Assembly: GCA_021613535.1 (NCBI GenBank)
Contig: CP075495.1
Location: forward strand, 124,001 to 188,000
Direction of reading: 5' to 3'
Source: Adineta vaga
Lineage: Eukaryota; Animalia; Rotifera
DNA length: 64,000 nt
Positions 4,425-49,409 of the stretch are shown here, piece by piece. The first letter of the stretch is position 1; every line of letters starts with the position of its first letter. Under the pieces are notes generated by a model that saw only the letters and a list, made by a program, of their open reading frames with translations, had not been told where the DNA came from and ran no database searches. Position numbers and translations under genes: made by a program.

Positions 4425-4426
4425 TT

Positions 4427-5702: not shown

Positions 5703-5734
5703 CTGGAACCCATGATGGTGGTAATTCCAGTAAC

Positions 5735-17054: not shown

Positions 17055-18836
17055 GAGTTCATGGGGAATTTGATTTTGTGGCAAATTCAAATTTGATCGA
17101 AAATTTCGAAAAAATCAAATCGTAAATTAAGTTTAGTAATGAAATAGGTAGGCGACTTAACATTTCTGTTAAGCAAAAGTTTATTTACAATCAATTGTGA
17201 TTAACTAGAGAAATCAATATCGGTATAGTTGTATTTGTGTTCTTTGTAAAATAGGTGGTATAGTGGTATAGGTGGTCTTAGCAATATTAATGTTACTTCG
17301 GTTTCAGAGGTATATAGTTAGAATGTTTTTTTAGCAGATTCTAGTGGTACACAATTTATATCCGTGATATTTTATTGAATATACGATTTTTAAGATAGCT
17401 ATGTAATTATAGACAGTAAAGCGTGAGTGAAAATGAGCTCCTTACTGAGGTTAGAGACGTTGTACGAATAATAATTATCTTGATGTATACGATGTCAATA
17501 GTTGAATTGCTTGTAAAGTGGAAAGTACATCACTAGGAAAAAATACTTGTTTTGTGAGAATGAAATGTTCTGATAGATCATGGTTGTGTTGATCGGATTT
17601 TAATAGTTGAATCGATTTAACCAAGTACATTATTAGTTTTATGTTTTTAACGTGGGTTTTGATTGAATTCAACGGTATTCTGCTCATCTGTATTCAAGAG
17701 GAAGTATTCGATTTAAATCGTACGCTTTGTCTTATTTTTCCTGCCGTATATAAATTTAAATGAAAATATCTACATAAGCGATAGATATAGAGAGTGATTC
17801 TATACGTGTCAGACAGAAACGTATTGCGGATTTTTTTGTATCAACGTTTCAATTCAGATGCCTTCTTATAGAAAGTTTTGCTCGTTGATGTAAGTGGTGA
17901 TGAAGCTAAACGATATACTCGAAATTATTTCACAAAGAAGCTTATACAAATATTTTAAAACGGATTATGGACACTTCAGTTAACGCTTTTCAGATGATTA
18001 TCGATTTTTGGATTGAAAATAAAAGAACTTCTACTATGATCATGTTGAGAACACAGTGTAAATGCCATTAGCTGTCATAATGACAGTTAATATATGAGGT
18101 TTTCGTATCATTTAGAATCCTCCAATAGTAAAATTGCAGATAGGTGAAAAGAATTATGAAAGATATCAATAGAAAGATTTTTATCAGCTCATATCATCTA
18201 ATAGATATTCAAATCTTCTTTATCGAACAATAAAACTAATAATTTAGATTGCATATTATGGCTCTTAAATGTATTTTTTGTAGTGACTACTTTTCATATA
18301 TAATACATATAATATACAATCAATACAATGATTTTATTATTTGTATTAAAATCAATTATAAAAGTATGATCTTTAATTGAAATTTCAGTTATTTCTTTAT
18401 TCGTTCGTTTATCGTACATATTATTATCATAACATCCATTAGGATACGTTACATAAGATAAAAAATTCCACGGCGTCATTTAATACTTATATGTTGATTT
18501 CCGGCGACATCTTTATACACATCAATTTTTGGTGCTAACGTTCAATGCATTAATAAAATTGTATTTTGAAAAGAAAAAATAATTTCTTGCTTTTTTCTAA
18601 ACAAATCTAGTCTTGAATAGATGCTTTTTTTTCCAACTTTTAGTTGGCTGGACTAGTAGAAGAGAGATACGTTCTTTGTTACGAACATTTTCTTTATTTC
18701 TATTGCCGTAATAAATAGTCCGTCGATTTCAATCCATTTTGTACATTATAATAAGAATACATTTGTCCAGGTCATTTCCATTATTCAGATAAAATTTCTT
18801 TGTTTTATTCGATCTATATAAATACCACAATTTTAA

Positions 18837-20405
18837 GAGACAGTCCATGACTGGATCGAGCACTGCCGTCATACAAAAATTTTTGACCCCCCTTTTTAAG
18901 TATCGCAAATGAAAGAGCATGAAAAAATATACATAAATCCAAAGTTTCAGCTTTTTTGAAGTTACCTTTATATGGATTTAAAGGTCAGCTTCTTCAGTAG
19001 GTCGATTTGATTATTTTTTATTTTTTTATTCTATGGCGGCTTAGTATTTGATTAATTTCTCATTCAAAAATTATTCAATTAATTTGAGCAATATGTCAAA
19101 CGATAGAGCGAATTGAGCTCTACAAAACTACATATTTAGAATATCTTCAAATTAGTTTAAAATATGACTATAAGTGAAAAACTGCCAAAAAACCACCAAA
19201 TTTTTTTTCAAAATTTGGAGTGGTTTTTTAGTGTTTTTACGATAAATTGGGCGGAAAAAAGTTCAGGCCGACAAAGATTTTTTATGGATTCGATAGAGCA
19301 AAAGAAACTGCACAAGATAGACCTAAAAAAGAACCCCAAAAACATGCGCATAGTACCTTAATTTAGCCCAAAAGATTAACAAAAATCATTATTTTTTAGC
19401 ATTTTTTAAGGATTTTCAGAGAAATATCTAGGATTTTGACTTTTTCCATCTTCAAGTACCTAAAACTTTATATACCATTAGATGCAGAATTAAAAACTGA
19501 ATCGTTTAGTGGTGGTGTGAAATCATTTTGTGAACTCTTTTTTTTCGTCAAAAATTTGCCTGAGGTATCCTCCCACCCAGGAGTGACGCAAAAAATGAAG
19601 TTCGGGATGAACCTTGTTTTACCACCGGCAAACAGCTCTAAGATGGTAAAACGATAGAAAGAAAGAAAATGACACACAGCTAAACAAATTTTTGACGAAA
19701 AAAAAGAGTTCACAAAATGATTTCACACCACCACTAAACGATTCAGTTTTTAATTCTGCATCTAATGGTATATAAAGTTTTAGGTACTTGAAGATGGAAA
19801 AAGTCAAAATCCTAGATATTTCTCTGAAAATCCTTAAAAAATGCTAAAAAATAATGATTTTTGTTAATCTTTTGGGCTAAATTAAGGTACTATGCGCATG
19901 TTTTTGGGGTTCTTTTTTAGGTCTATCTTGTGCAGTTTCTTTTGCTCTATCGAATCCATAAAAAATCTTTGTCGGCCTGAACTTTTTTCCGCCAATTTAT
20001 CGTAAAAACACTAAAAAACCACTCCAAATTTTGAAAAAAAATTTGGTGGTTTTTTGGCAGTTTTTCACTTATAGTCATATTTTAAACTAATTTGAAGATA
20101 TTCTAAATATGTAGTTTTGTAGAGCTCAATTCGCTCTATCGTTTGACATATTGCTCAAATTAATTGAATAATTTTTGAATGAGAAATTAATCAAATACTA
20201 AGCCGCCATAGAATAAAAAAATAAAAAATAATCAAATCGACCTACTGAAGAAGCTGACCTTTAAATCCATATAAAGGTAACTTCAAAAAAGCTGAAACTT
20301 TGGATTTATGTATATTTTTTCATGCTCTTTCATTTGCGATACTTAAAAAGGGGGGTCAAAAATTTTTGTATGACGGCAGTGCTCGATCCAGTCATGGACC
20401 GTCTC
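18837..20405. mobile_element. Non-autonomous foldback element with ~720-bp TIRs (Sola3- or Kolobok-like)
   Basis: 18837-~19558 is the near-perfect reverse complement of ~19686-20405. Ends are GAGAC...GTCTC, flanked by ttaa / tcaa. Confidence 0.85.
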
Positions 20406-20523
20406 TCAAATAATTCAAATGCATTTACAAGAATTAGTCTGTCTGGAAGATGTATTTCTATCTTTAAATTTCTAATTGTTTTTTTACTATTTAGATAAAA
20501 CAAATCTGATTTTATGATATTTT

Positions 20524-23500
20524 ATGGCAAACAATCGAGCATCATTCCATGCAATTCCTAATGATTTTGCATCAATTCTTGATACAAACTTCCAACAATT
20601 AAATTCATTATCGAATTTTGATGTTGAATTTCTTGATAAAGAGGATGATTGGTATCTACTGTGTTTTTTAAAAGAACAACAAAGTAATGGTCATCCTTAT
20701 GAAGTAACATTTGCTGGTTTGAATTCCATCATTGGTACATTATCTGATGAATCGTGTTTTTATAATCCAGTTAATAACAGTATTGGTTTCTAGAATCAAA
20801 ATCACCATTTGTTAGGTGAAAGTGGTATGTGTAATTTTCCTTCAAAATTCAACTAGACGTGTATATTTCTAATGACTTCTAAAAACTCTGCATAACTTCG
20901 AATAGAAATCATATGTTGAGAAATAAAATTAGATATTTCTACATTATTCGTCTTGAATGATATTCTGTTAATAACAAATAATTCAGTGATGACTTTTTTT
21001 CACGAAAAATCTTGCCGAAAGTTATCTTTTGATTGATTATATTTTAGTACTAACAATCATTCTTTACTTTAGCGTCCAACAAAAGTTCAATCTGCCAAGA
21101 AGTGTCAGCTGCTTTACAAAGTGTTATTAACTCATTTCCCGATCGATATTCGTCTGCAAAACAAAATTTAAACAATGAAAATGATGATAATGATCGCAAC
21201 ATTCATCTGGAGAAAAATAAAAACAAATCACAAGAATTAGAATATTCGTTGGTGGTTTCCAATACAACAGAAGTAGCATTACTTACAAATTTAGCAAAAA
21301 TTAATACTATCCTGTTACATTCGGATGGAGATGTTGCACTTGGTAAACTAGGTTACTATGAACAAGGTAAAAATGAAACATCCGATGGTGTAAGTTTATT
21401 TTGTGACGCTTCCGACGGTATTCGTGGTGGTTTTATTCGAGGAACAGGTGTATCACAAATAAAAATCAACCGACCAGTAGCACTTTTTAATATGTTTGTT
21501 GCAAGTACTGGTACAAAATTAACTTCAATGCTTCAACGTTTTCATGAAACAAGAATTCAAGATGGTGTTTTTGCACGTGTCTTCTTTACATGGTGTCAGT
21601 CTATTAATGAATTACCAAAAATCAAATCAAAATCCTTTACACATATTCCTTCATTTTCTCATTTCGCACATTCAGTTGCTTATTTTTTTAACAATCAATT
21701 TCAATTTCGTTACATGGCAAATAAATCTGATGTTAGTGAAATCAATTCAGAGTGTGAATATCATTTCATATTTTGATCATAAGTATCAAACATAAGGATT
21801 CCATAACTTTTCAAATCTGTTGAGATTCCTTTTGAACAGCGTATGATATTCTTCACAATCTTCTTTCTATGAGTTAGTTGCTCATTTTTATCCACAAATA
21901 TGTGTTATTGAGTGTTTCGTTTTTTTTCACATATAGGTATCGATTATGAAGAACGTTTATTAGAAGAACTGAAAAAACAAAACGTTACAACACCAGCAAC
22001 ATATGCTGCTTCTTTGACCAGTAGTGATGTTCGAGAGGATGATTATTATGATAGTCAAAACCACAAACGTGATACTTCTTCTTTCAAGCTTCTGGCATCT
22101 TTAATCAATGATTGGTGCAAATCATCAAATTCTTCTGAAAAACATTTAAAATCAATTTATCGTAAAGTTGTGAACATGTTATCAAAATGCATTTGGTCAA
22201 TGAAAGTTATTCGTATTATATTTCGATTAATGAGCAAGAACTTGAAGTACATCGATCAAAAACAAGGTGATCGATCAGCATCCAATTTGGTTTCGATTCA
22301 TGTATCATTTCAACATGCTATGGAAAGAACAATAAACAATTTTTTATTGGCTGAGTGCCAGCGAATTGATCATTCTAAATGGATCATATGGTCAGATACC
22401 AATGACGTTACTGTGGGTTTTACTTGGTATCAACGTAAAATGCTAGTTGTTGAAAATTTGCTCACACTGCAACCATTGAAAGATGTTATTAACGAACGAT
22501 TAGGGAAAAAAACAACTGAAAAGTTAGTTCATGTTATTCTACAGACTAATGAAGAAACAAATTCATACATTATTTTCATTTAGAAATCAAACGGATTATA
22601 AATTGGACAAGGCCAAAACAAAAATAATGAATTTTTCAGTTGTTTTTTTTACTTGAACATATTTAACCAATAAACGACAAGATGCAGGATCAGGACAGTT
22701 TTGCCACTCTTGTGATGTAAAGCCAGATGAAATCTTGACTGCTTTAATCGACGATGGTTTATTGATTGGTGGAAATTTTATTAAAAGTGGTCGTTCTAGC
22801 AAAGAAGGTTTACAGTATTCATCTTTCTGTAAACAGTTACCGTCAACAATTAAAAATAATCCTCGCATTCAACAAACGTTTGAAGTAAATATTACCAGAT
22901 TTCATTCTATTGAAACATCCGTAACCGAGAATAAATTCAAGACTAAAAAAATTCATTCTAATGTCTTTATATAATGAATACAATTCTATGGATATTTTCA
23001 TAATCGAGACTTAAAAATGAAAACTAAATCAGAGCACATTAACAGATAAAAATATATGAACGCATACCGATCATAATTAAAATAATGTTTCTTTTTGATT
23101 TAGCGATTAGGTTTGGACATGTCACGTTATGAAAAATCATTTGAACGTCAATATTTACCAATGGGTAACGAATTTACTAAAGAAGCTATTGAATTCATGA
23201 AAAACAATGATGGCTTTGTTCAATATTATCATAACTATTATAAAGAAGATCAATGTTTTCAATCATTCTGAGAAATGGTACACGAACGTGTCCGTCTGGG
23301 CGAAATCATACCAGATAAAAGTTCGTATAAATTTACATACATCATGAATTCTCATTTTCATCCGTGGATCTTTTTATTTTGTGTTTTCTCGTAGATAATT
23401 CATATTCAAGTGGTCATGTACTCGCCAATAACCAACAAAATGAACATATTCAAAAGGAGAGTATGATTGAATTGGACAATACTCCTTTAAATATCATGAA

Positions 23501-25581
23501 AAATACAACAAATATAATTAGTACTGCTTACTGTGCTGAAACCAACAATGGTATTACTTCATAATTTATGACAGGTAATAAACTACGATAATAATATTAT
23601 CTATATCCTTGTTTAGATCAACAAATCCAACCAAATGTTGAAGAACCTCATATTGATTATAATTCAGTTAATATTTATAATACAACAGGAAATGAACATC
23701 ATAGTTTAACATCGGCAAATTTGACAAAAAATATTGCTGGTTCCAATAAACAAATGCCGGCAGCAAATGATACATTAGATTCTGTTTATGACAATTCCAC
23801 AAACGAACCATCTATGGAATGTAAGTGAATAGGAAATATTTATTTCATTTGTTTATAAACTTAATTTGACAAAATAAATGATTTTCTTCTTTTCAAACTT
23901 TTGTATTTGCATAGATTCTTTTCAACATTGTTCGCTTTCTCCATTTACATCTAAAACAACAGCGTCATCGATTATCATTGGTGTTGCAGCAGCTTCAGGT
24001 GATTTTTCTGTTCTATTGTTTGAAATAATAAAAAGAACGTTCTGTTAAAATCAATCAGAGAATAGAATGATGAACTACATTGCTAGTGTTCATACAAAAG
24101 ATCAAAACTGTTTATAGTATTACTACTGTGGAACATATTCGTTTATCTTTTGATTCTTTAGTTGCAAAAAAAAATCAAATTACTACCAATGATGAACAGC
24201 TTGAATATGATGAGCCATTTGATTCAATTGCCATGGCTGATAAATCAAGTGAAAATGAATTCGTTAACAATTCAATATCAACCGGTGAGTTTTATTCTAC
24301 CATTTTTCAAAGAAACACTCTCTGTTTTTCTATTTTCTTATAGATGACCAAAATCCAACAGATCAACGCATGTTTCCGAATATAAATGTATTGGATAATA
24401 TTACAAATATTATGGGCACATCTTCAACAAGTATTTTACAACATCACACTGAACGCTTTTTGATTGAGATCTGGATATTTAGATTCTAACGATCAAGATA
24501 TTCCAAAAAGAAAAGGACGTGGTCGTCCAAGCTCAACAAATGTAACATCGAAGAAATGGTCCACAGAAGGTAAAAGGTTTTACTGTGAATTTATTGATGA
24601 GCGTCGATGAAGCGAAGTAATTCAAAACAATCGAATACACCTCTTCATTAATGATATTCTAAGAGAACTTCCATAAAAGTTCAATTAAAATTTTCCTATG
24701 AATAGAAGTAACGTAAGAAAAATTGTGTCAAATTTAGACAGCTACTGAAAATGATAAAGATATAGTTTTAATAAATGAATAAATGATTGAGAAAATTTTC
24801 ATTTGACTTTAGTTTGAGACACTCCTATATCCGTTATTATATAAACAAATGTTGCAAAATGTTATGTATCTTTAGAAGTCAACAATCTTATTATGAATCC
24901 AAAATCTTCTTCCATATGGAAATCGATTATTCTGAAACGACAGTTTATTGTTGGTACATCGACTGATTTGTTCAAAATGATTCCTGCCAGACTTTTTGAT
25001 GAAAAGTCTCGGTTTAAACTAATTGATTTTCTTGTACTGAAAAAAATATTAATCAAAGGTGATTGGTTTCGTGATGCAAAAGGTGCTTCGATTAATGGCT
25101 TTTTGAAAGGAAGTCCAATTGATGCTCAAGTGGCGATCAGTTTAGTCGATTTTGGTATTGATATTCAAGAGTATAAACTTTCTTTAAATCCAAATTCAGA
25201 TACCAAACGACATATTGATGGGAAAATGATCAATCAATCGTATTTATTTAGCAATGTATTTTAAGAACAAATAAACAATGACGAATGGCTTAAACAGAAT
25301 ATGGAAATCAACGAAAGATTTATTTACTTTACAAGTGAATTAACTCAAACCACCTCTAATTATTGTAAGTGACAAATGTTGTTTAATTCGAAATTTAACA
25401 TTTATATACTGTTCTCTCTATAGAAACTGATCGATTTCAACAACAACGAAAAGAAAAGGCTCGACGAACGCTAACAAATAAGAGAAAAAAAGCTGAGGAA
25501 TTGCAAGAAGAAACTACAAATATATGTGGCACCGATATGCCAGTCAAACGTCAACGAAAACCAAAACTACGTGATGATTAG
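20524..25581 (+). pseudogene. AAA+ ATPase gene of element A (multi-exon, premature stops)
   Basis: Walker A LLGES-A|SNKS (intron 20825-21072), ILLHSDGD, LFCDASDG..FIRGTG, FVASTG, DGVFARVFF; AT-hook KGRGRPS (~24510-24535); basic tail. Stop at 20791 and others. Confidence 0.8.
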
Positions 25582-26491
25582 GATATGTATTCTTTTGATC
25601 TGAAATCAGCATCATGCACTTTTTTCTCTTAGTACACAATCTTTATTTATTATTTGATGAGTTTTCATTACTAAGCTGTGAAAATTGTTTTTATGTGTAA
25701 ATCTGTTTTCTACGATGACACATTCTTTTGTTCCTTTCACATTCAACTGAGTTTAATAAAATTCGTTTTGTTTTCTTTTTCTTTTTCTTTTTCTTTTTCT
25801 CGTGTAATTATTTGTCTGCTACAGATACGTTTTCTTTTTCTTTCGTGAACAAGTTCAGTATCTTTTAGTCCATAACTTTTCCATTTCTAACTATAGATAA
25901 TTTGTTTTTCACCTTTTCTTTTCTGAATATACTGTACTTCTTTTTTTGTGAATTATCTTCCCGGAAGATATCGAAACTTCTTAATGAATTCATTTGTATA
26001 TTTTCTGTGGTTTAATTTTACCAACGCAATTTCATTTTCTGAAAACATATCTTATGTTATTGTTCTCACAAGATTTGTAATTAATCATGATCATAAGAAA
26101 AACATGTAAATTACAACAATAAACTTTATTCTCAAGAATTCAAACTTAGTTTCTTTTGTACTAATCGGATGAGAAAATCATTCATAACAACGATTAGAAT
26201 TTTTGAAGGGATTTTTAAAAAATGTCTCGTATTTTTCATTAAAAGAATGTTGGTAAAGAATATTCATATTTTATCATTGAAAACTACAATCTCCTTTATT
26301 CTTTAAATCTTTGTACAACATTGTATTTTCTAGAATCACCGATAAATTTGATCCTTAGTTGAAATTTATCTATCAAAATCTCATCTATCAATTTTTTATA
26401 TCAACAGCCATTTGAAAATTCGAAGTATAACATAGAAATAGGATAATTTTTTTGTCCACTTTTTGCAATATTTTTATTTATTTTATCTCAG

Positions 26492-28944
26492 ATGTCTATT
26501 AATGAAACTATATACCAACGTCTCGAATTAGCATTTCCAGAAGAAAATAAACGAACTCTCAAAGCCGCCACTATCATCATCAATGTTGGACATCTAATTC
26601 TAGCAAGTTATGTTTATCCATTACCACCTCCTTGCACGAACGAAGAACGACTCGACTTTATATGTTTCATTTTAAAAAAAGAAACTGGTATCGATTATTC
26701 CAGTAATGATGTACTTATTGCTCATAATATCTTGATGGGTAATGAAAATGTACAACAAGAATTGAATTTTGATTGTAGCATTGAGACAATAGAACATTAT
26801 TTGAACCAATACAAGCATTCTCAACCTCAATCTGCATTTGCAAGAAATTTTACTCCTCTTCTTCTGTTACTGCGTCGAACCATATGTAGTATATGTAATG
26901 CATAATTGAAAATAATTTTCCAATCATGTGGTCATGTCGTTTACTGTACAAAAGTTCAATCGTGTCTTCTTTATAAAACCGACTGTCATCCATGTCGTCG
27001 ATCGAATCGTATATCATCTATTTACTTGATAGATCAAAAGAAAACACTCGTCACTGCTAAATCACAACAATCTGATTTTATACATTTTTCTGGTTTAACT
27101 GTCTTTTCGAAAGAAATTCTCATTTCTTTTTCTTCGCAATTAATTGATGATTATGCCACTTTTGAAGGTTTTTCTTCTGCTACGATAAAAGTCTTCAATA
27201 GACTTCATCCCAAAAGGGAAGATAATGTTACAGCAGAGAATCTTGCTCAGAATTTAGAAGCTGTTTGGCTATATCATGAATTAACAAATTTTATATTAAT
27301 GACGAGTAAATCAACAGATATTCGTTTTCCATATGCTATGAGTGAAGGTCGAACAAGAATCAAAGGTCAACAATCATTTAGAGCAATATTTATTGAAAGA
27401 AACTTGAACTGGATTTACCACGTATTTACTACTTTCTGATCAAATCATGAAATTGTTTTTGGTACCTGTAAATGTGGCAATTGCTCGAAAGTTGTACTTA
27501 TTGATGGTCATGAAAAACCGTATGTTTTTTTCTAGAAACTAGTTTTCTTTTAACTTTGTTTAGAATCAAAGATGGAATCATAGAAAACTATGCTTTTGAA
27601 CGATCCATTTGTTTTCCATAGATTTAGATTTCATCACTTAGAATAAAATAATGACTTAGTTATTTAATCTTTGAAGAATGATTTACTAATTCATCATGAG
27701 CTTTTTATTTAGAATGTTTAAAAATACTCAATATTTCTCTTATTAAATAAAAAGAATGTTCTTTTACCTGATTTAGACTTCGTTTAGTGTGCAGATATGA
27801 TAATGTTACCAGTATTATTAATGCTGCCGAACTTGGACCAATAAACAAAGGTTGTCCATATATGCCAAGAAGAAGCAAATCGGATAATCAAGGATTGGAT
27901 GGTATGCGTTTAATTTAGTCATTTGATTTAATATCATTCATCATTCTTTTCATATGGATTGTTGAGTTGATGGAAAATAGTCTTGAGCTATTTTCAACTG
28001 TTTTAACGGTATGAAAATTGAAAGAGAAAACATTAAATTCCTACATGAACTTTTCACTTAAAAACAACTTCTATGAATATTTTTTATGTTTAGATCATGT
28101 ATATCATTATTGTGATTATCATCGAAACAAACATGCTGAAGAATTGTCAATGGAAACGAAAATGTCAGATAATGAATTACAAAAATATTTGAAATATCTC
28201 AAAAAAATTGATCGTAAGGAATCTCAATGTAATGTTGGCCGAAATGATATGAAAGAACGTTTTGAATCAAAGAAACGATCCATGGGTTTTATTGCTTCAT
28301 TCTTAAACTGTGGAATTATTATTGGCTTTTCCAATTCAGTTAATCATGAAGGACCTCGTAAAATCACCGATCATCTTTTGACAATGTTAAAACTTGGAGC
28401 AAAATTACCATCGTTATTGGTCTATGATGCTGCATGTCAATTACATAAATTCTGGAGGTATAGATTTGGTACCGAATACATGCAAGAAACTAAATATTCA
28501 CAACAATTAATGGATATGACATTAGTAACAGATCGATTTCATAATACAGTACACATAGGTAATTTATGCAAGACTTTATTTAATCCTGACTCCGAACAAA
28601 ACAAAGCAAAGTTTATTGGTATCGATACAAGTATTGCTGAACAAGCATTTTCGTATCTCACCAATTTTAAAAGATCTCTACGAAGTTTTTCTTATCCTAC
28701 AGCAGCATTGTTTACAATTGTACTATTTCATTTAAAAAACTGTGATACAATTAATCAAGAGCCTGCTCGCCAATGTCTTATTATTAATACTCATCTTGAA
28801 AATGTGATTCAGAATCAACAATCTTATCAAAGTTATTGTGCATTTGAAACACTAATGATGGAAGATGAAGTGAATGAATATAATTCTAAGGTTGATGATG
28901 AAAACATAGATACTATGAATACTGGAAACGTTGAAAAGAAATAA
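26492..28944 (+). pseudogene. CxC-KDZ transposase of element A
   Basis: Cys cluster ICSIC..CHPC; CSKVVLIDGHEK (~27480-27520); GCPYMP..YCDYH; LVYDAACQL, VTDRFHNTVH, CK..FNPD, TSIAEQAFSYL. In-frame stops at 26903 and 27437. Confidence 0.88.
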
Positions 28945-29774: not shown

Positions 29775-29903
29775 AGATAATATTGAACAAATCTTTAAAA
29801 TATTTTTACTTGGTTGTGTCAATGATAAGCCTGCAACGTCGCTTCTATTAAATCACGACGAATCAATTGGTTTTTTTGGTTGTTCATATTGTACTATCAA
29901 AGG
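29775..29903 (+). pseudogene. EnSpm/CACTA-type transposase, middle fragment
   Basis: FLLGCVNDKPATSLLLNH...GFFGCSYCTIKG (D.PA...G..GC..C motif), followed by donor gtaatt. The next intron holds the hAT element. Confidence 0.8.
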
Positions 29904-36700: not shown

Positions 36701-36955
36701 TAATGAAAGAGGAGGACGTGGCAAATCTCAAATTGTAACCAGTTTTGAATAAATTTCTGCGCAGATTTCTGATTTTTAATCAGAAATTTACTCAAGCGCT
36801 CTTACAAAAAGCCACCAAGATCTATCAATGATCGATTATCTCTAGCGAGAAGCATGAGAGAACTCGTTGATTAATACTAAGACTATGCAATACATATTTT
36901 CTCACCTAAATACAAGCCTAAAGAGAGAGAACAGATAATATATCAAGTTTGATTT

Positions 36956-37645
36956 AAATTTTCAATTCTTTGTAAAATAATGATCATGAACTATATTATC
37001 AGTCGTCCACTACTATTAATAAACATAAGAAATCTAGAAATCAGAAATCTAGTATGGTCTAAAATTTTGAATTCTTCTTTGTAAAATAATGATCATGAAC
37101 TATATTATCAGTCGTCCACTACTATTAATAAACATAAGAGATCTAGAAATCAGAAATCTAGTATGGTCTAAAATTTTCAATTCTTCTTTGTAAAATAATG
37201 ATCATGAACTATATTATCAGTCGTCCACTACTATTAATAAACATAAGAGATCTAGAAATCAGAAATCTAGTATGGTCTAAAATTTTGAATTCTTCTTTGT
37301 AAAATAATGATCATGAACTATATTATCAGTCGTCCACTACTATTAATAAACATAAGAGATCTAGAAATCAGAAATCTAGTATGGTCTAAAATTTTGAATT
37401 CTTCTTTGTAAAATAATGATCATGAACTATATTATCAGTCGTCCACTACTATTAATAAACATAAGAGATCTAGAAATCAGAAATCTAGTATGGTCTAAAA
37501 TTTTCAATTCTTCTTTGTAAAATAATGATCATGAACTATATTATCAGTCGTCCACTACTATTAATAAACATAAGAAATCTAGAAATCAGAAATCTAGTAT
37601 GGTCTAAAATTTTGAATTCTTCTTTGTAAAATAATGATCATGAAT
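36956..37645 (+). repeat. 109-bp tandem array (~6.3 near-identical copies) in the left arm of element C
   Basis: gatcatgaa at 36982, 37091, 37200, 37309, 37418, 37527 and 37636. Confidence 0.97.
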
Positions 37646-38437
37646 CCTTACCAGTCGTCAAATAATATCAGTTTATTATAGAAAATATCGAGAAAAGGTA
37701 AGAAAGAATTCTTGCATGAATTAAATGGTCATTAGAGGGATCTTGTAGTCTGAATAATTGCAATTTATGGTAGAATTGTGTCATATCTTGAGAAATTTGA
37801 TATGTGCATTATGACCAAAAACATAAATAAAAGAATTTAGAAAATAATTTTTTATTGAGATTTATACAGCAATATACAAAACGAGATGGTATGGAAACAT
37901 CTTATACATATATCTAGATCGAATGACATAATGCATTCGATTCTTTTTCCAGGCATATAGTGCTGACGAATACATTCTTTATACATATGACTTTATCTGT
38001 TGCGTTCTTCTTATAAGCTATATATGATAACGTTAACAAATTTTCTTTTTCTTTCTGTAATCATATGGTATACCATATGGTGTATCATATGGTATGTCAT
38101 ATGATATCATATGTTTTCAGCTGAAATGAATTTTTCTTTCTTGTGAACTAGGTGTCGGTATTCGTTTGTGTATATTCGTATGATATCATCATCAAAGATG
38201 ATTTCTCTATTTGAATACTTGCCCATTAAAATGACTTGATTTCTTTGTATATATAATCTATTTAAACTGTTAATTTACTAAAAAAATATCATCTTTTTGT
38301 AAAACGATATCGTTCACTGCAAATTCAATTTTTTCCTTTATATTTTACACGGTTTTGTTAATAAACAGTCGAAAGAAATCGAGGTAATATTTTTTTTTAA
38401 TTCTTGGTACGATTGATTATTTGATCTTAGTAGTAGC

Positions 38438-41400
38438 ATGTCTAAGCGTTCATCAGTTATGGATGACAAAATTTTGTCGGAAATGTTATTGCGCAATATC
38501 AATGTGGCAACATCAATGAACATGAAAATGAGTGAAATTTTAAACGAACAACAAATGCTTTTGCTCGATACCTATAAGGAAACATACAATTACGATCCAT
38601 CTCTCTCGTTTTTTCTATCATTGGGAATGATTTCGCATTTCTCCCAATGTTCATACTATACACATTTCTCTAGTCCAGATCATCATCCCGTTCAACTATA
38701 CATGTGGTTGCTTGGTGCAAGCGGTAAGTTTAGCCAATATTTGACGAAGAATCATCACTAATATCAGAATCTAACTCTGAATGATAGAGCTCTGAAGAAT
38801 AAGATCTTTTCCATTTTGTATTCATATTCTACATGAATTAATAAGACATATTAAACAGAATAATTCAAAGAATATATATTGTATTGATATTTCATTTTCT
38901 TTCATCGATTTTTTTTCTTGAATTCTTTTTATGTTAAAGGTAGTGGTAAAACTCATGCTTTTCGCCAAGTTGAGAAAGCTATTCTAAAGACAGAAAAACA
39001 ATTTCCATCCACTTATTTGAAACCCGTAATGATAAACGGGAATTTGACAGAAGCAGGTTTGTCATCTGTAGTTACACATACAAATCATATCGGTTTACGA
39101 AACCATTTGTCATCGAACCATAAAATCTTTCTCAATGATGATGCTGACGTTTTTGCTGAAAATTATGGTTTATATAATGCCATTGATAGCTTGAAAGAAC
39201 ATGAAAGAAATTTAATTTTATGTGGATATGATGGGTAAATAAATGTATTTGAAGAAATATATCACATAACTAGATTATTTTGAAAGATTCTTAAATTCAA
39301 TTCGAACAACTGGGACGACTATCATTAACATTGGTGACAAGCGATTGACAATTCTTATTGCCGCTACAGGTGGAAAATTGATGAAAAATATGAGGAATTG
39401 GTGTAATTTCGCAGGTTTTGATGGAACCCATAATAGATTCATATATATGGCCATCCCAAAAGTGGCTTGTTCGAGACCACAGAAGTAAATGTTCTATAGA
39501 TAATTAGATGTATTATGAATCAGAATATTTATTTCTAGCTTTCACAAAAGAGTATATTCTAAAAATAATCCATCATTCAATCATTTATGTATTATTGTTC
39601 ATTTATTTGGAACAGTTCGATATGCATTTCAGATGAGCGAACATGAACGAACAGATATTTATGACGGTATGGATGAGTAACACATTGAGTAAACTATAAT
39701 GTTTCCATTCTGTGATACATTTGTAGCCACATTTAATCAACCATCGAATTTAGCAGCTGATGATGAACAGTCTCAATCACCAAACGATTTTTCAGCTATG
39801 TATACAGTATGGAATTTGATAGCAGATTTAATTGAAACAAATGATCAAAAACACGATCAACAGAGACAGATCAATGATTTTTATGGGAAACTTAAAAGCA
39901 CGTTTCCACGCATTGCTTGCTTGATGCAACTTTATTTTAATGCAATGGAAATTTTGAATGAAGTACGTGAAATTGTATTATATGCTGAGGGAGATAATAA
40001 TGATTTAATTATAAATGAGAGTTTTATTACGAATGTACAACATTTGATTAAAAGTAAATATTATGTTTATGATATGACGTATTTACCACGTGATACTATT
40101 GATCAAACAACAATAGAGCCGATGATAATCGTGCAAAAAGATGCTGTTTTAGCTGCCTGGAAGTGGTATGAGCATCATCTCGATGTCGTTACAACTTTAT
40201 TTACAATTGATTACTCTTTTTCCGCGAAACCTGTGACATCACATTCATCAAGTTTATCTTCACAGAAAACTTTAAAACAAATGATTATGCTTCTCGATTT
40301 CAACATTTTCCCCGTATCAGCACTAACTGATAAACATCCTGTTTCTGGACAAACGTGCGTACATAGATTTCAGTAACCTTTCAATTAAATTTTTATGCTA
40401 TATTTCTCATTTTTAGTGGTATCCTTAAAAACAAGCCGGCATTAGGTCAAGAAGCTATACGAGAGTTAATTAGTGATGGCTTGTTGAAGTTTAATTATTT
40501 CTTAGTTGATTCTCGAGGAAGGAATGTCAAGTCTTATTTGAAGGTACCAATAACAACAATACATGATCCATCTCAAGAGTTGTTGAAACAAAAATTAAGT
40601 AAACATAATATAAGCATAGATGAGTATTGTTCTGCTTATGATACATCTACAATTCCACCAAACAACAAACTTTCAACATTATCTGTATCAATATTTAAAT
40701 ATAGTTCATGTTTTTTATCATATTACCAATTATGCAAGGATCAGTTAGAAACAGTAATTCAAGAACATATTCAAAATGGTAACGTAAAGGAAGTTCAAAC
40801 TGGATGTTTTGTTATCGCGAATGAAAGTGTATTTTCGTGTAATTATGATAATATCGAAAATTTATCCTCAGTCAATCGGCAACGAAAACAGTTATGCGAT
40901 AAATCGAAATCAGTAAATATTGCAAGATCGACAACTGATTCTTCAATTCAATTTGAAAAAGCAACAACGTCAAGAATCAATGTTTTGCATGATGCCATCG
41001 AACAAGAATATGAAATACAGAATGAGAACTTATTAGAAGAAACTACCTTTGAACGGCATGTTGATGTGATTTCTAGTAATAGTTTTCCCACTAAACGATT
41101 ATTATCATTCTTATCTTCCATTTAGAAAAATTCGCACTTGAGAATTCTCAAACGTCAAATGATCTTGATAATTCTTTGATATCTATGTACGACTGTCAGA
41201 TTGAAGGTGAAGTATTGAATGAGAGTACCAATGAAACAAATTCATCATCATCAGTATCACATGTAAATAAAAAAGGTGTGAATAATTTCTTGCTTTCTTT
41301 TACATGAATTCATTTTTTGAATGATGATTTAGTGAACAATATAAATAGTGAATATACAGAACAAGCAGTGAAGAAAGTAATGAGTAACATCGTATGCGGA

Positions 41401-42210
41401 AGATCTGTTCTTTTCACGAAGACAGATCTTACTCAGATATGCAACAAACCAGGAGTACGGTTAGAAGCAGTGAACCGTCTAATTGCAGCTGAGTTACTTA
41501 TTCATGGAGACAACTATTGGTTGGAAACAACTCATTCTAGAAAGGCTGTTAAGAAAGATTCGAAGTATCTTTTACGAGAAGGATGGATGAAGTAATAACT
41601 TCAATAAAGTGCTTTTTCGCAAGCAAAGTAGATTTGATTTTTTTTCTTTGAAGGAAGGCTCCTGAATTACTATCGAATACATCCAAATTCAACTTCATTC
41701 AATCATTGCAACAAAATGTAATCGTTTATGTTCTTTGCACGAGTTTTGATCGATAATAAAATATCTGATTCGATTTTTTCATAGGCGAATACATCATTCG
41801 AAGATTACATGAAGAGCTTTTATCCGCATCAAGAAACTAATGTATTCACTAACAACAATTGGACATTATCAGATGAATGTGTCAAAATATTTCAATCAAA
41901 TGACTTTTACAAGCAACATGTTCGATGGGATATTGAGCGTTTTAGACCATCAGATGTACTGAACGACGCAAGTGTCGACAATGTCAAAGACTTACCATTG
42001 ACACAAGTTTCACATTCATTGCCATGTAATAGGAATGCAGCAGATGATATATCTCAAGTATTACCAGAAGAAGCATCTAATAATGCTGCAGAAACAAATG
42101 AAGTAATAAGCGCAATACCGATATCTACACGACCGAAGCGAAAAGTGCCGTCAACCGAAAACCAGGAAAATGAAGTGCGTACACAGCCAAGAAGAATGAA
42201 GAAAAAGTAG
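38438..42210 (+). CDS. AAA+ ATPase gene of element C (about 9-10 exons, open after splicing)
   Basis: Canonical Walker A LLGAS-G|SGKT (intron 38724-38939), IFLNDDAD, LILCGYDG|FLNSIRTTG, LIAATGG, DGTHNRFIY; basic tail RTQPRRMKKK. Confidence 0.88.
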
Positions 42211-42591
42211 CAACTGGTTACAATGATATTTCGAACTTTTTAATGATTCGATTTTTTTATTGATTTTTTTTATTCCATCGCATTTTATTCATCGAATGCT
42301 TTTAGATTTTTAGTTCTTCTTTTACTTTATGGACATACTACGCTTCTATGGGAAGTTGAAATAAAAAGGATACCATCATTATTTGAACAAAAACGAAATC
42401 TCGTTGGTTGTTAAGCTATCATGTAATTATGAAAAACTGTTTTTATTGCAATGCATATAAAACATTAAATGAGAAAATAAGGTTATTATTGCAATAGAAT
42501 AGTGATAATGCGCACATTACCCACATAAATTATAAATAAATGCTCTCTGAATATTATTTTTTTCCATATATTTTCAGATAAATATTTCAAT

Positions 42592-44641
42592 ATGAATACA
42601 AATTTGTCAACCCATACACTTGTTGAAATCACAGATGTAGAACATGCTCTGATATTAATGATGAGAACAATGCCTTTGGATGAAATAATGTGTGTGATGA
42701 ATTTGAATAGGTTTTTCCCACAAGAAGTACCTAACAAGTTTCATCATATCAGGAATATCATTAATTTACATTTTCATAAATCATATGAAATGTATCATAT
42801 ACGAATGATAATTGAATTTGTTTCAACGCAATCAGTGTATGACACAATGTTTCGCCAATATTCTGTACATGAAATGATTGAAAAATATCAGGCGAATAGT
42901 ATTGCTGAATCGGTTAATGCACATGAGTTGTATTTGCAACCATTTACTACCAACTGCATTCAATGCCAAACAGCATTGAAATTGGAATATACTCATCGTG
43001 CTAAAACAGTTATGTCATTAATACGAAATTATAAAGCTCGTAAGTGAATATATCATATTTATTGATTTGAAATAGATCATTTGTATTCATCTTAACAGTT
43101 ATTGCCACTTGTTATTGTGCAACTTGTGATATCGAAATATTTCCAAATTTTTTCATACATAAGAAAAAAAAATTTATTACATTAGAATCTATTAAAAATG
43201 ATGAATTTATTTACTTAAGTGGCAATCAGATACTTGATCAAAATTTGCTGATTGATTTTGATCAGCAACTAATTCAAAACACGGTGTCTTTTGAAGGATA
43301 TACCAATGCCTATAACTCCAAAATTGTATTAATCAACAGTAGACGAAGTCATAATGTTTCTCCTGTAAATGAAAATGATACTTCGTAAGATGCTAATAAT
43401 TTTATTTCAAATATAACCACACTGTGATTGTTTTTCTAAAGAGTTTTAAATGAAAAATATTTTCAAATGGCATGGATTCTAACTAATATTGCCAAGTTCA
43501 TTTTTATGGCTGGAAATGAAAAGATTATTCAAATACCAATGTCTGTACGAGATGCTGATGAATGCAACACATATTTTTTTAAAATCAAGGATGATCTTTA
43601 TAAAAATTTTGTTGCTTTTTGGACAAATCATCAACGCTTTTCAAAAAACTGCAATCCTGAAACATGTTCAAAAGTTTTCGTTGTTGATGGACATCAGAAA
43701 GCCAATAGATTAGTGTGTCAATATAAAAATGTGTTTGATTGCACTATATCAGAGCTAGGACCAGTCCAGATGGGATGTTTGTACTCACCGTTAAGAAAAG
43801 GTACGTGGCTAACTGTATGCCTAGATACTCATTTATATTTTTTCCATAGCTCCAGGTATTGATCATAGGTATTGTCAGAATCATCAACCAACACTATTGG
43901 CTTCAGAAGATCGAATAACAAGTGTGACGCATCAGGCAGTTAAAGAAGATAAAGAACACGTATTAGACAGATCAGCATTAAAGGATTACATAAAACCTGA
44001 TGGCCAATATGATGATAAACTTTGCAATGTATTTCGTTCTGGAGCAAATGTTGCATCGAAAGTCAGTACTTATGGATTTTTGGCTACATTTTTAAGTTGT
44101 GCTGTTGTAGTTGGTTTTACAGAGCAACCCTGTTCAGAAGGAAGTTAGTGCGAAAATTCAGCTTTTCTTCTTACCAGTAATTAATGTACCTCTTGATTTT
44201 TCTAATAACAAAATAGTGCGCCGAGTTCTTCATCATATTCTAACAATAAGACGGTTTGGTGAATTGCCAGCTGCCATGTGTTATGATTGTGCATGCACAT
44301 TGAAGTTATTCATAAAAAATCATTTCGGTACGGAAGATCTAAAGTCAACAAATTTTACAAAATTTCTTGAATCTTTAACTATGGCGATTGACCGTTTTCA
44401 TGTGAAGAATCATACAAGAGCAATGTGTAAAACGGTAATGAGACCTGATCATTCATCCCATAATGAGATTTTTACATCCATCAACACACAAGTTGCCGAA
44501 CAAATGTTCTCTTACTTTTCGCAATTTAAACATTCATTTCGAGGCTATAATTATCCCAAATCAACGATATTTTATACACTTCTTTTCCATTTAAAAAATT
44601 GCAAGACTACAGGTATTAGTTCTTTTTATCAAAGAGTTTGA
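42592..44641 (+). CDS. CxC-KDZ transposase of element C (5 exons, open after splicing)
   Basis: TNCIQC..CYCATC..FPNF; CSKVFVVDGHQK; GCLYSP..YCQNH; SEG|MRRV; CYDCACTL; AIDRFHVKNH; INTQVAEQMFSYF. Confidence 0.9.
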
Positions 44642-44845
44642 AATTTTTTACCAACTTTCTCACGATAAATTCTTACTCTGATTTTTTACTTAATTCTTAT
44701 AAATTTCCTTCGTAATCATTATTCGTTTTGTTGAAAAATATATTTTTTATCGAAAAAACTAATCAACATCATGAAATTATGAGCAATATATATAAATCAC
44801 AATATACTTTCCATTTCGAGATTTAATTTACAAGACGCAAAAATT

Positions 44846-44963
44846 AAATTTCTGATTTCTAATTGATTTCAAATGATGAGCAGAGTAAATTTCTGATTCC
44901 TGATTTCTAATGGATTTCAAATGATGAGCAGAGTAAATTTCTGATTCCTGATTTCTAATGGAT
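44846..44963 (+). repeat. 48-bp tandem repeat (~2.5 copies) in the right arm of element C
   Basis: gagtaaatttctgattcctgatttctaatgga at 44883 and 44931. Confidence 0.85.
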
Positions 44964-47277
44964 TGTTTTCAGTCATATAATTTGAAATAATAATTCATAC
45001 GTTAGCATAGGGCTCTGCATATTATTTCAGTTCGCAGTAACTCTACGAAATGTTAGAATTTCAAAATTTTCAAAATTTCAAAATTTTAAACTTTACAATT
45101 TTCAGAAATTTTGACATGTCATCTTCAAAATTTGTATTAGTTTTATATTTGCCATCCCATGTGAAAGAGAAGAATACTCTTTACGCTCATTTCTATAGAC
45201 ATCGATTGATTAATAATTTCCTATTTAAAGAATTAAAATGACTTACTCCATTCGAAGCACCAATAATAGAAAGACGTGGTTCAATCAGAATGGTTAAACG
45301 ATCAGCTGTTGCTTTTACATATTTTTTTGGACAACTGAAGACAGTTTGGACAAATGATTTACAATTAATCCTACAAGTAAATATAAAAGCAATTAAAAAA
45401 TTAAATCTGTTTTACTAACATCGTGTTGGTGGATTTGTCTTTAGATGGAAAGATGTTTGTCTTCTGACTGTCATCATCGAATTCATCAAATAAGCCTAAT
45501 ACGTTAGAATGTTCTGCTAATGCAGCAATACAACCTGGACCAGTAAACTAAAAAACATTATATATAAATATATATATACATCTATATAAAATGATTGATT
45601 ACTAATTGATATTACCTCATTAAGTACTTTTTCACAAACGTATACAGTATTTTCATTAGAATTTGTTTTCGATATTCTTTTCGATCGATTTTTTCCTAAA
45701 TTTTTAACCGATGTTTCGGAATCATGTGATTTCATTTCCGTTTCAAGTTCATCAATTTCATTACAAGCATTGGAAATTTCCAAGAATGTATCCGATTTAC
45801 TATAGCCTAACAAAGTACAAAGCAGAATTAACTTTTATCAATAATTGGTGCAGTATTTCATACCAGAACATGTGGTAATCAACGTATATGACGCCAAATT
45901 CTTTTCCATGTACGAACAATTATCGAGCAAAATAGTTGATTGATTAGAAAAGTATGCTATAGATGATGTTGTTGTCAAAGCAATGATACAAGAATCTTGA
46001 AGCAAAAATTTTGCTTGTGTATCAAAAACATTTGCTAAATTTTCACCATAAATTTCAATAAGGTCATAATTAATCGTGTTGGCAAAGTCGAAATTACGCC
46101 AAAAAAGATTTTCTGGCGTGACACCACTCGTCATCTAAATAAAAAATAAAATTCGCCAATTATCTACTCGTAATAAATAATGCACATTTCATATGAACAC
46201 AATTCATTCAGATAACTCAATCATTTTGTTACAAAATTTCAAGATAACGAAAAAAGATCAGTTAGATGCATCTAATAATCACAAGCAACATTATTGCAAC
46301 AAACATCAGGATAATCTTATCATAATTTCTTATTCGAGCAAGTTCACTGTTAAATTACAATCTTAATTAATGTTCACTTTTGTACATAAAAACATCATCC
46401 CTTGCAAAACTGTATCGACTCGACATCTATCGACTCAAAACATTTCGTAATTATACTTATTAGCACATGCTACGAACTACAACATTTTTTTCAACAACAT
46501 ACAAATATTCAATTACCGCAGAAACAATAATAACCCGTACTCACATTTACATCATTACTTCAACTCGATAAATATCACGAATAGAGATTTCAAATTTGAG
46601 CATTACTTCACAAAATATTTTATAACACATCAGCATAATTTTTTTTCGTACACAAAAACAGTAAAGAAAACTATTTTCAGTAGTTTTATATAAAACTGTC
46701 TCTTTCCACCTTTCATACTCATGTACACATACTAACTCCTAACTATTCCAGCTTAGTGTCACCTTCATCAACAGTCAATCGCCATATTCTGTCATAACTT
46801 CTAATTCATTTTACCAATACCCAGTTTATTCAAATGGTTTCGGAAAAAGTTACCATAGCTAGTTCATCTTTCACTAACCCGCATACCAACTGACAGAACC
46901 ATAGCAACACCTACAAAACAAGATCTATCACAGCAATAGTCGTTCGACTTAAAAAAATCCCACTCCTTACAGATGGTACTTGATTTAATTTATGACCAAA
47001 GAGCGCAACTCATTCTACCACCAACTCAAAACTTGACGCAATAGTCATCATCATAAATACTAAATTCAATCGACGAAGGCCGAACATACCTTCACCCTTT
47101 CTCATTCCCAAAATCAACAAACAGAACAATTATTTGAGGTGTAGTACGGCCGTTTCGGCCGTTTCGGCCGAATCGCGAGAAACCCATTTACACGCAACCC
47201 TCAATGCGCATATCTCTCATTGAGGGTGCTCGGAAATCGGGACCCACCTGAAAACAAAGATCCTTTGATTGCGGGAC

Positions 47278-47725
47278 GATGCATCTCCCAAGGGATATGC
47301 ATATCCCACCACCCCTAGACCCTGAAAGTGATTTAAAAAAATATCATCATTTGGAGACGGGAGATAGAGATGCGGGATATGGGTCATCTCCTTAGGGAGA
47401 TGCATCATCTCCCTAGGGATATGCATATCCCACCACCCCTAGACCCTGAAAGTGATTTAAAAAAATATCATCATTTGGAGACGGGAGATAGAGATGCGGG
47501 ATATTGGTCATCTCTCGTGGGATATGGGTCATCTCCTTAGGGAGATGCATCACCTCCCTAGGGATATGCATATCCCACCACCCCTAGACCCTGAAAGTGA
47601 TTTAAAAAAATATCATCATTTGGAGACGGGAGATGGAGATGCGGGATATGGGTCATCTCCTTAGGGAGATGCATCATCTCCCTAGGGATATGCATATCCC
47701 ACCACCCCTAGACCCTGAAAATGAT
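47278..47725 (-). repeat. Same 124-bp unit inverted (~3.5 copies, one with a 21-bp internal duplication), right subterminal repeat of element B
   Basis: gcatatcccacc at 47299, 47423, 47568 and 47692; reverse complement of the left array. Confidence 0.93.
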
Positions 47726-49409
47726 CAAGAAATATGAGATAACATTGTGTATGGTGCTCGGACAGCGTCTCTCGCATATCCACAGGCGTCTCACGCCATC
47801 CCCGATCTGCGGGATATGTGACACCACTCACAGGAACAGGTGGAAGTAACATCATCAACACCATCACCTCAAACATTGAAGAAAAAAAAGGAATTTTTCG
47901 TAAAGAGTGGTTGTCTATCACCGAATATTCCTCGTGGTTACAAGAATTAAAACATGATTTAACAAAAGCTCGATGTAAATCTTGTCTCAAAACCTTTTCT
48001 GTTCATTGTGATGAAAAATCAGCTGTAGAAAAACATATGCTTAGTAATGGACATAAAAATTCGATGAAATCATTCGAGAGTAAATCTTCATTGTCGCAAT
48101 TTATAACTCCAGAAAACGAATTAGATAAAATTTCAGCAGCTGAATGTGTGCTAGTTTTTCATGGAGTGAAGCATGGACACAGTTACAGATCTCAACAATG
48201 TACCACTGATTTAGCACGATCCATATTTTCATCTTCATCAGTTGCCAAGTCAATGTCACGTGGTAAAACTAAAGCTCGATCCATTGCGTGTAATGTTCTT
48301 GGTCCTTATTTTACAAAACAAATTGTTGATGATCTATTAAAAGCAAGATTTTACTCATTATCAGTTGATGCATCAAATAAAGGAAATTGTACAACATATC
48401 CTTTTGCAATTCAATACTTTTCTGAAACAGGTGTTAGTCAAGGTAAAAAATTATTAGTATTTGATATTTTGTATCTTTATTCAATATCTAAATAATTTTT
48501 CTTTAACATTTAGGGCTTATTGATTTTATTGAAGATCCTCATGAATCAGCTGATGATATATACAGGAATATTGTAATGATTATAAATAATCACAAATTAT
48601 ATCTTGAAAATTTAACTAGTTTTGGTGCTGACAACGCCAACGTTAATTTTGGTAAATATCATTCAGTATTTGAATTATTGAAAGGAAAAGCACCTCATCT
48701 TGTGAAGGATAAATATGAATGTTCTTCTATGACATTTTAATTGATTTTATTCGAACTATTCCTTTTGACTGTTCTATTTTAGGCAATTATCATTGCCATG
48801 TGTTGCACAGTGCTGTAAAAACTTCACACGATGATTTACCAATTGATATTGAAACAATTCTATGTAAATTATATTCTTATTTTTCAAGATCAGCAAAACG
48901 AGTTGAAAAATTAAAAGAATATTTTGATTTTGTACAAGATGATTTTCAAGTAAGTTATTCATCTCCATCTGCTGTGTAATATAATGAGTAAACCATCTAC
49001 AAGAATTTAATGTGTTTGTTTATTAAGGTTTTATTAAAACATGTAAACACCAGATGGTTAAGCTTGCTTCGATCGATTGAACGTTTACTTGATCAATATG
49101 AGCCGGTTAGGTTATATTTGTTGTACGAAGGAACAATGACAAAAGTACAACGACTTTTGAACTCTTTTTTTTCTGATTATGATGGTCAATGTACTTCGTA
49201 TTTTTTACAAAATGTTCTTTCTGAAAATCAAAAAGCTGAATTAAAATTGCAACGTACATATACAACAGCAATTGATCTTTATCCTATTATTACTAATTTA
49301 ATCAATAAATTGCAACAAAAGCTGTGCGACAAACATTATGGTCATAATACACAATTATTATTAGATCGTATAAAGAAAACTGATGAAATTAAACATGAAG
49401 AAATAATAA

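Follow-up and report, generated by a model that had tools for sequence, protein, structure and literature searches.

Bdelloid transposons of the KDZ superfamily pair their transposase with a putative MCM-like AAA+ ATPase

The bdelloid rotifer Adineta vaga carries DNA transposons in which a transposase gene assigned to the CxC-KDZ superfamily (KDZ, Kyakuja–Dileera–Zisupton) is paired with a gene for a putative MCM-like AAA+ ATPase. We analysed a 64,000-nucleotide stretch of its genome, here called the window (GenBank assembly GCA_021613535.1, contig CP075495.1, positions 124,001–188,000; 124–188 kb of contig 2 in a six-contig assembly of 100.8 Mb in total), an AT-rich region (GC ~30%) that forms a transposon nest. 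Three elements in the window, A, B and C, each hold both genes within their own ends, and they represent different, deeply diverged KDZ-superfamily families of the rotifer, not copies of one another. The pairing recurs at most KDZ loci of the genome and in further species, and every named relative of the window genes comes from a bdelloid rotifer.

Each element is delimited by short target duplications and inverted ends. Element A occupies 17055–29766 (+ strand; 12.7 kb) and is flanked by the 8-bp sequences ATTAATGA (17047–17054) and ACTAATGA (29767–29774), which, read directly, match at 7/8 positions. Its ends are backed independently by a paralogue on contig 6, 84% identical internally at the nucleotide level, whose homology begins exactly at 17055, ends exactly at 29766 and gives way to different sequence beyond; a clean 8-bp duplication is gone from the flanks of this old copy. 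Element B (30373–47829, − strand; ~9.0 kb excluding C, with inverted ends of ~28 nucleotides) lies between perfect 8/8 copies of ACAGGAAC at 30365–30372 and 47830–47837. Element C (36712–45161, + strand; 8.45 kb) lies between perfect 8/8 copies of TGAAAGAG at 36704–36711 and 45162–45169 and is nested in the ATPase gene of B, where it sits between the sensor exon (45196–45411) and the arginine-finger exon (36113–36436). By our own arithmetic, random 8/8 identity at a fixed junction has p ~5 × 10−5 for the base composition of the window. In gene orientation all three elements start with 5′ GAG and finish with (A/C)TG at the 3′ end, and imperfect inverted repeats of ~15–28 nucleotides lie just inside. 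Subterminal 124-nucleotide arrays are present at both ends of B (30479–31118 and 47282–47735), and a tandem array of 109 nucleotides × 6.2 lies near the 5′ end of C (36966–37644). Nested in A is a foldback (palindromic) insertion of 1.58 kb with arms that are 99% complementary (18829–20412, no strand assigned); it is missing from the contig-6 copy and must therefore have inserted after the two A copies diverged. Element A also interrupts an open reading frame (ORF; 16657–17070 plus 29767–29910) that is in frame once the element and one copy of the duplication are removed and that has no Pfam match. A and B are spaced merely 600 bp apart, so both may occupy one older unit.

Only two genes were found within the element ends, as collinear exon series on one strand with the ATPase 5′ and the transposase 3′. 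We built these series from stop-to-stop ORFs, profile mapping and alignments and ran searches exon by exon; annotated full-length proteins of other bdelloids replaced spliced models for Pfam searches and folding. In A, the ATPase gene (20524–25578, +) has the mapped exons 20518–20790, 21054–21773 (Walker B to arginine finger), 21912–22580, a first winged-helix module (22657–22971 and 23104–23268), a second module (24845–25261) and a basic tail (25399–25578). The CxC-KDZ transposase gene follows (26492–28941, +; exons 26447–26902, 26906–27436 with the Cys cluster, 27440–27532 with DGHEK, 27772–27915, and 28015–28941 with YDAAC, DRFH and AEQ). The ATPase gene of B is severed by C into a 5′ part (45196–46134, −; start at 46134, Walker B exon 45404–45547, sensor exon 45196–45411) and a 3′ part (34180–36436, −; the arginine-finger exon 36113–36436 and later exons to the basic tail at 34180–34599), and its KDZ transposase gene lies downstream (31565–33795, −; exons 33391–33795, 33066–33347, 32571–33062 with IVDGTWK, 31951–32358 with YDA and DRFH, and 31565–31819 with CEE). 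In C, the ATPase gene (38438–42207, +; exons 38417–38758, 38888–39235, 39270–39485, 39519–39677, 39693–40373, 40367–41122, 41308–41592 and 41785–42207) precedes the CxC-KDZ transposase gene (42592–44638, +; exons 42529–43044, 43071–43385, 43440–43859 with VVDGHQK, 43825–44145, and 44111–44638 with YDCAC, DRFH and AEQ). The Walker A motif of C (GASG|SGKT) is divided by a 216-nucleotide GT-AG intron (38724–38939), and four further candidate GT-AG introns of 52–62 nucleotides are frame-compatible, with a good donor consensus at each junction. An earlier note on this DNA, made from the sequence alone, had described three elements bounded by inverted ends and 8-bp duplications, each with an ATPase gene followed by a transposase gene on the same strand, and exon mapping together with the contig-6 paralogue of A upholds this. 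The common layout that it drew holds for the order of the two genes and not for the details, as the genes of B run on the minus strand, its ATPase gene is divided by C, and A holds the nested foldback. It had also seen no obvious DNA similarity among the three, and blastn of A, B and C (for which, and for printing the ends, the halves of B were joined without C) gave nothing beyond a single 26-nucleotide match; its label of three divergent copies had to be dropped in favour of separate families.

Homology places the window transposases in the CxC-KDZ superfamily. We assigned membership through homologues because the window's own exons fall under the Pfam cut-offs (26.6 bits for KDZ, PF18758; 26.9 bits for CxC5): the last exon of C matches PF18758 with E = 2.9 × 10−4 and 21.0 bits, and the transposase exons of A have no KDZ Pfam match. 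Paralogues in the same genome exceed the KDZ cut-off with 41.3, 33.9 and 32.1 bits, and one of a further lineage, E, scores 38.6 bits for KDZ and 29.0 bits for CxC5 on one exon of 452 residues. The A, B and C transposases align full length to cut-off-passing paralogues, and that of A matches a copy at 18.36 Mb of contig 3 with E = 6.8 × 10−35. Catalytic D, D, E motifs are retained in all three (DGH(Q/E)K or DGTWK; YD(A/C)AC; D(R/K)(F/L)H..NH; (A/C)E(Q/E)), in agreement with the KDZ signatures first noticed in the raw sequence. Cys-rich exons of A (26906–27436), B (33066–33347) and C (43071–43385) align to the CxC5 region of the paralogue, and CxC5 is annotated on transposase genes of Adineta ricciae and Didymodactylos carnosus. 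No SWIM finger was found in any transposase exon scanned, and the elements are therefore filed under KDZ and not under Zisupton proper. Their 8-bp duplications (8/8 in B and C, 7/8 in A) and inverted ends are of the Zisupton/Dileera type; target duplications measure 8 bp in Zisupton and Dileera and 7 bp in Kyakuja (PMC12730594).

The partner genes are assigned, by sequence homology and structural modelling, to the DUF3987 family with a predicted MCM-clade AAA+ fold. Against a cut-off of 27 bits for DUF3987 (PF13148), the core exon of A scores 22.5 bits and C 16.4 bits, full-length bdelloid homologues reach 54.9, 40.9 and 32.4 bits, and the more canonical E lineage of the same genome reaches 72.3 bits. 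An AlphaFold (AF2) model of residues 1–413 of a Didymodactylos homologue, made with a 28-row alignment, has a predicted local distance difference test score (pLDDT) of 77 and a predicted template modelling score of 0.82. The best 50 Foldseek matches of the ATPase model are all MCM proteins, and so are ranks 1–11 in VIA, an alignment-independent structure search (Z 10.5–12.6 over 222–254 residues, root-mean-square deviation 3.9–4.6), where they are followed by RavA, BchI, BrxL (Z 9.0), ComM and the SCCmec helicase Cch, with MuB at Z 6.3. A sequence search of the ATPase profile against solved structures gave P-loop-level matches alone (best E 0.0036). Among the conserved motifs, Walker A ends in KS/KT, Walker B has DE, the arginine finger is (S/N)RF, and sensor 1, of the AAA(N/H)P or ATG type, reads AAAHP in the E lineage and A(S/T)TG elsewhere; the MCM counterparts of sensor 1 and arginine finger are AAANP and SRF. 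The resemblance to DUF3987/MCM-clade proteins proposed from motif order is thus borne out by homologue scores and by both structure searches.

Beyond the AAA+ core, the ATPase has a helical region, two copies of a winged-helix-like module and a basic tail. The first module copy folds confidently (residues 60–220 mostly at pLDDT >90), and structure matches of this C-terminal module are exclusively winged-helix DNA binders, at weak scores (Z 5.0–5.8). ATPase exons and full-length homologues contain no match to IstB or a related Pfam family, and scans of all exons and full-length homologues gave no primase or polymerase domain (PriCT/AEP). AgaPH, a DUF3987 protein of a bacterial island, is by experiment an oligomeric 5′–3′ helicase that depends on Walker A and Walker B (PMC11724360), and an earlier prediction had cast DUF3987 as a helicase that replicates mobile elements (PMC5862659). 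By homology to AgaPH, the rotifer ATPase may likewise assemble into rings and unwind DNA.

The pairing extends far beyond the window. We surveyed the whole genome with improved profiles of the ATPase and KDZ genes, merging exon hits by eye and scoring a pair where an ATPase gene lay ≤8 kb upstream of a transposase gene; pairing at some KDZ loci was judged from coordinates alone. An ATPase gene accompanies the transposase, in tandem or head-to-head, at ~24 of 34 KDZ loci, with one ambiguous locus (contig 3, 16.38–16.39 Mb) at which the genes are 8 kb apart, and conversely ~24 of 31 ATPase loci are paired. Paired loci are spread over five of the six contigs with fixed order and spacing, and copy number is very low, at 1–3 per family. 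In most lineages the ATPase gene precedes the transposase gene in tandem; head-to-head pairs, with the genes ~1 kb apart, characterise the E lineage and a related contig-2 lineage. Tandem pairs also occur in Didymodactylos carnosus and A. ricciae and head-to-head pairs in A. ricciae, Rotaria socialis and A. steineri, and the public annotation of A. ricciae itself places CxC5+KDZ beside DUF3987. Unpaired ATPase loci are fragments, including one on contig 5 and D, a fourth ATPase gene in the window (~740–2551, −; exons 2198–2551 (N-terminal), 1357–1848 (core) and 740–1234). The earlier note had placed this gene at 781–2527; it is real, and we consider it a relic because neither the 10 kb downstream of it nor the rest of window 1–17000 yielded a partner transposase.

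Between families, the ATPases share 20–37% identity and the transposases 22–49%, and in a set of 12 elements the pairwise identity of one gene tracks that of the other (Spearman rho 0.68, Mantel p ~4 × 10−4). Ratios of nonsynonymous to synonymous substitution (dN/dS) between related copies are 0.18–0.28 for the ATPase and 0.09–0.22 for the transposase, indicating purifying selection on both. Conservation of the pair over deep divergence, which had been suggested from the three window elements, therefore extends to ~24 of 34 KDZ loci and four other bdelloid species, and co-divergence with purifying selection (dN/dS 0.09–0.28 overall) favours a core factor over cargo, as the same note had supposed.

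Several further observations concern these loci. A C-family KDZ element begins ~400 bp past the end of the window (L013; contig 2, 188001–198000) and has transposase exons and solely 3′ ATPase exons, which marks it as a 5′-truncated or interrupted copy. KDZ–ATPase pairs with the same scores lie in opposite orientation at 18.509–18.515 and 18.666–18.672 Mb of contig 3 and at 40.7–45.4 and 207.4–212.1 kb of contig 2, which suggests that the elements lie within large inverted duplications (palindromes). The head-to-head E lineage may have a third gene, an ORF that follows the transposase gene in both A. vaga and A. ricciae (L020:4132–4941; L025:3809–4555) and that in A. ricciae has a faint match to GDSL/SGNH lipase-type proteins. 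The E-lineage DUF3987 core exons of A. ricciae (P0108) and A. vaga (L019:5658–6884) are 95% identical, reflecting either unusually strong constraint or recent transfer between Adineta species; homologues in Rotaria and A. steineri are 52–55% identical.

The relatives of the ATPase that protein searches found outside rotifers are distant, and the nearest of them are prokaryotic in character. A profile of the window's four ATPases retrieved 50 proteins at E ≤ 0.001 from 1.84 billion representatives; among ten of these clusters looked up, including the six long proteins, the named ones are all bdelloid and the rest are metagenome or Logan sequences. Word-based searches likewise returned only bdelloid proteins, sequences from metagenomes or read assemblies, and a handful of remote DUF3987 proteins (P0107, P0109–P0111), at least one of them on a prokaryote-like contig. 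Outside rotifers, the nearest clusters consist of DUF3987 proteins from bacteria and phages, and the closest non-rotifer protein that we could place is 23% identical and belongs to a compact gene array of prokaryote-like type that also has small helix-turn-helix genes. An unrooted ATPase tree resolves three well-supported groups joined at one node, namely prokaryotic proteins, the E lineage and all other bdelloid lineages; this topology is compatible with a single bdelloid origin, which it can neither prove nor root. Capture of the ATPase from a prokaryotic mobile element is plausible. We further put forward, as a tentative possibility, that a bdelloid KDZ ancestor captured a bacterial or phage-type replicative helicase and made it obligatory in a eukaryotic DDE-type machine, possibly with a replicative or episomal step.

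The elements share features with several known systems and coincide with none of them. As in other KDZ elements (PF18758 plus CxC), the transposase is homologous, with an N-terminal Cys cluster (CxC5) and D, D, E motifs; the 8-bp target duplications are those of Zisupton and Dileera (PMC12730594), and the large size (here 8–13 kb) and extra ORFs recall Cryptococcus KDZ1–3, whose additional ORFs are without recognisable domains (PMC11343200). The SWIM finger of canonical Zisupton (PMC11343200) was not detected in the rotifer transposases. Where other KDZ elements bring a TET/JBP dioxygenase or a domainless ORF, the rotifer elements have a gene for an MCM-like AAA+ ATPase as their second gene, and their ends are asymmetric (GAG versus (A/C)TG). 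With DUF3987 helicases such as AgaPH the ATPases share the Pfam family and a motif set made up of KS/KT in Walker A, DE in Walker B and an arginine finger of the RF(L)F type; by contrast with the prokaryotic proteins, the rotifer gene is spliced, is without a PriCT domain or partner primase, is extended by winged-helix modules and a basic tail, and is linked to a DDE-type transposase instead of a replication module. MCM, SCCmec Cch and ComM give the best structural match, over ~250 residues of the AAA+ core with similar sensor-1 and arginine-finger motifs, whereas no N-terminal OB-fold domain like that of MCM was identified in the rotifer ATPase and identity to MCM is 10–15%. Mu A/B, Tn7 TnsB/TnsC and IS21 IstA/IstB also place an AAA+ ATPase beside a DDE-type transposase within the element, but those partners belong to another AAA+ clade, have no sequence relationship to the rotifer proteins and lack a eukaryotic host. 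Among eukaryotic transposons, Academ encodes a helicase. Helitrons do so as well (PMC12730594). Like both, the rotifer elements are eukaryotic mobile elements with their own putative helicase; the helicases of Helitron and Academ, which come from superfamily 1 or 2, have HUH or other nucleases as partners, in contrast to the AAA+ ring-type ATPase and KDZ transposase here.

The KDZ superfamily and two-gene transposons are known already, but we came across no description of a eukaryotic DDE-type element whose conserved partner is an MCM-like AAA+ protein. In the open literature, the sole source checked, DUF3987 appears solely in prokaryotic or phage contexts, no combination of KDZ, Zisupton, Kyakuja or Dileera with DUF3987 was found, and the KDZ literature examined ascribes no helicase or ATPase gene to a KDZ element, in keeping with the earlier suspicion that the pairing is undescribed.

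In our view the ATPase is probably a transposition factor of the helicase type, encoded by the element and working as a ring helicase. The CxC-KDZ transposase, with its D, D, E site, would bind the ends and presumably make a staggered 8-bp integration. With its winged-helix modules as guides, the ATPase would form a helicase ring on the DNA of the element and would supply the ATP-driven unwinding or remodelling needed for element propagation, either at the ends while they are cleaved and their strands transferred, or in element replication or donor-site repair. DNA binding by the modules, and participation of the ATPase in transposition of any kind, we infer. An AAA+ gene beside a DDE-type transposase within the same ends is also the genetic logic of Mu, Tn7 and IS21, and MuB is among the generic AAA+ structural matches (Z 6.3), so the protein could instead be a target-capture and activation regulator like MuB, TnsC or IstB, which would polymerise on target DNA and pass it to the transpososome without unwinding. 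We regard this as unlikely: the predicted fold and motifs are those of the MCM/H2-insert clade (Z 10.5–12.6 against 6.3), no IstB or related Pfam match was found and the sole characterised relative is a helicase. Clade and family are what lead us to rank the helicase role above a regulator of this type, and of the two mechanistic options that the earlier note had named, these structural and sequence comparisons favour the helicase.

Quite unlikely, in our estimate, is a role as initiator-helicase of an extrachromosomal replicative stage, melting an origin in the subterminal arrays and recruiting the host replisome like the Rep and Cch proteins of bacterial islands. The prokaryotic relatives indeed serve as helicases in mobile-element replication, the structural matches include SCCmec Cch and SaPI Rep/primase-helicases (Z 8.5, 6.6 and 6.3), iteron-like arrays lie upstream of the ATPase gene of C and at both ends of B, and the C-terminal module is winged-helix-like; yet the elements have no primase or polymerase gene, A is without an array, copy numbers stay at 1–3 per family, and target duplications with inverted ends suit ordinary cut-and-paste. 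Another reading would make the ATPase a cargo or host-directed gene, for example for anti-silencing or defence, with no part in transposition, given that KDZ elements elsewhere bear TET/JBP dioxygenases or additional ORFs whose function is unknown, that some KDZ loci here are without an ATPase and that BrxL, a phage-restriction AAA+ protein, is among the structural matches (Z 9.0). However, the linkage has persisted while identity fell to 20–35% and gene orientation changed, it holds in five species, and the ATPase is as constrained as the transposase, which together leave this reading improbable. Although the window is a dense transposon nest, accidental adjacency of two repeat families that cluster in a transposon-rich subtelomeric region has a negligible chance of being correct, as three elements enclose both genes between a single pair of ends with its flanking duplication, the two genes keep their order and spacing at ~24 loci across five of six contigs as well as in other species, and by our own arithmetic an ATPase locus would fall ≤8 kb from one of 34 KDZ loci in 100.8 Mb with a chance of ~0.5% per locus. 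Linkage, co-divergence and purifying selection thus make chance adjacency untenable and cargo unlikely.

Several points weigh against a ring helicase that serves transposition. The ATPase was undetected at five substantial KDZ loci (contig 2 at 4.8–7.0 kb, 246.8–249.1 kb and 16.24 Mb; contig 3 at 19.33 and 20.00 Mb), so it may act in trans or be dispensable. The helicase comes without the primase or polymerase that accompanies it in prokaryotic mobile elements, and the tandem arrays of B and C, which are possible binding sites, were not found in A. Both the KDZ and the DUF3987 membership of the window genes run through homologues, and the helicase and transposition role is predicted from fold, family and linkage. 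Complex prediction of the ATPase core with the transposase, using E-lineage single exons, scored 0.00 and speaks neither for nor against binding. No RNA-labelled run contained element C, and four such runs searched with 38400–44390 gave no support for its transcription or splicing, returning only two spurious 18–19-nucleotide matches, a result that does not prove silence.

The window holds other repeats around these elements. An apparently intact Ty3/gypsy long terminal repeat retrotransposon (4143–12202) lies beside the ATPase relic D, with direct repeats of 167 nucleotides (4143–4309 and 12036–12202, 99%) and long open frames for gag (4719–5702; Retrotrans_gag, zf-CCHC) and pol (5735–9643; protease, reverse transcriptase, RNase H and integrase). 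Two ORFs bordering the nest, 47818–48495 (+), which has a weak C2H2 zinc-finger match, and 58119–58871 (−), are 29% identical over 100 residues and possibly represent another repeat family.

KDZ transposons are among the least understood eukaryotic superfamilies, and recent papers note extra ORFs of unknown function in them. One such accessory ORF can now be assigned, by homology and predicted fold, to the MCM-like DUF3987 AAA+ ATPases, and it behaves as a core gene over deep divergence. This yields the testable hypothesis that a DDE-type transposon of a eukaryote depends on a ring ATPase of its own, an arrangement hitherto the hallmark of bacterial Mu, Tn7 and IS21 and, for helicases, of rolling-circle elements. 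If the capture of a replicative helicase that we tentatively propose is true, it would amount to a transposition mode undescribed for any eukaryotic cut-and-paste superfamily, and the elements of bdelloid rotifers offer a candidate case in which a prokaryotic mobile-element gene was recruited into a eukaryotic transposon.

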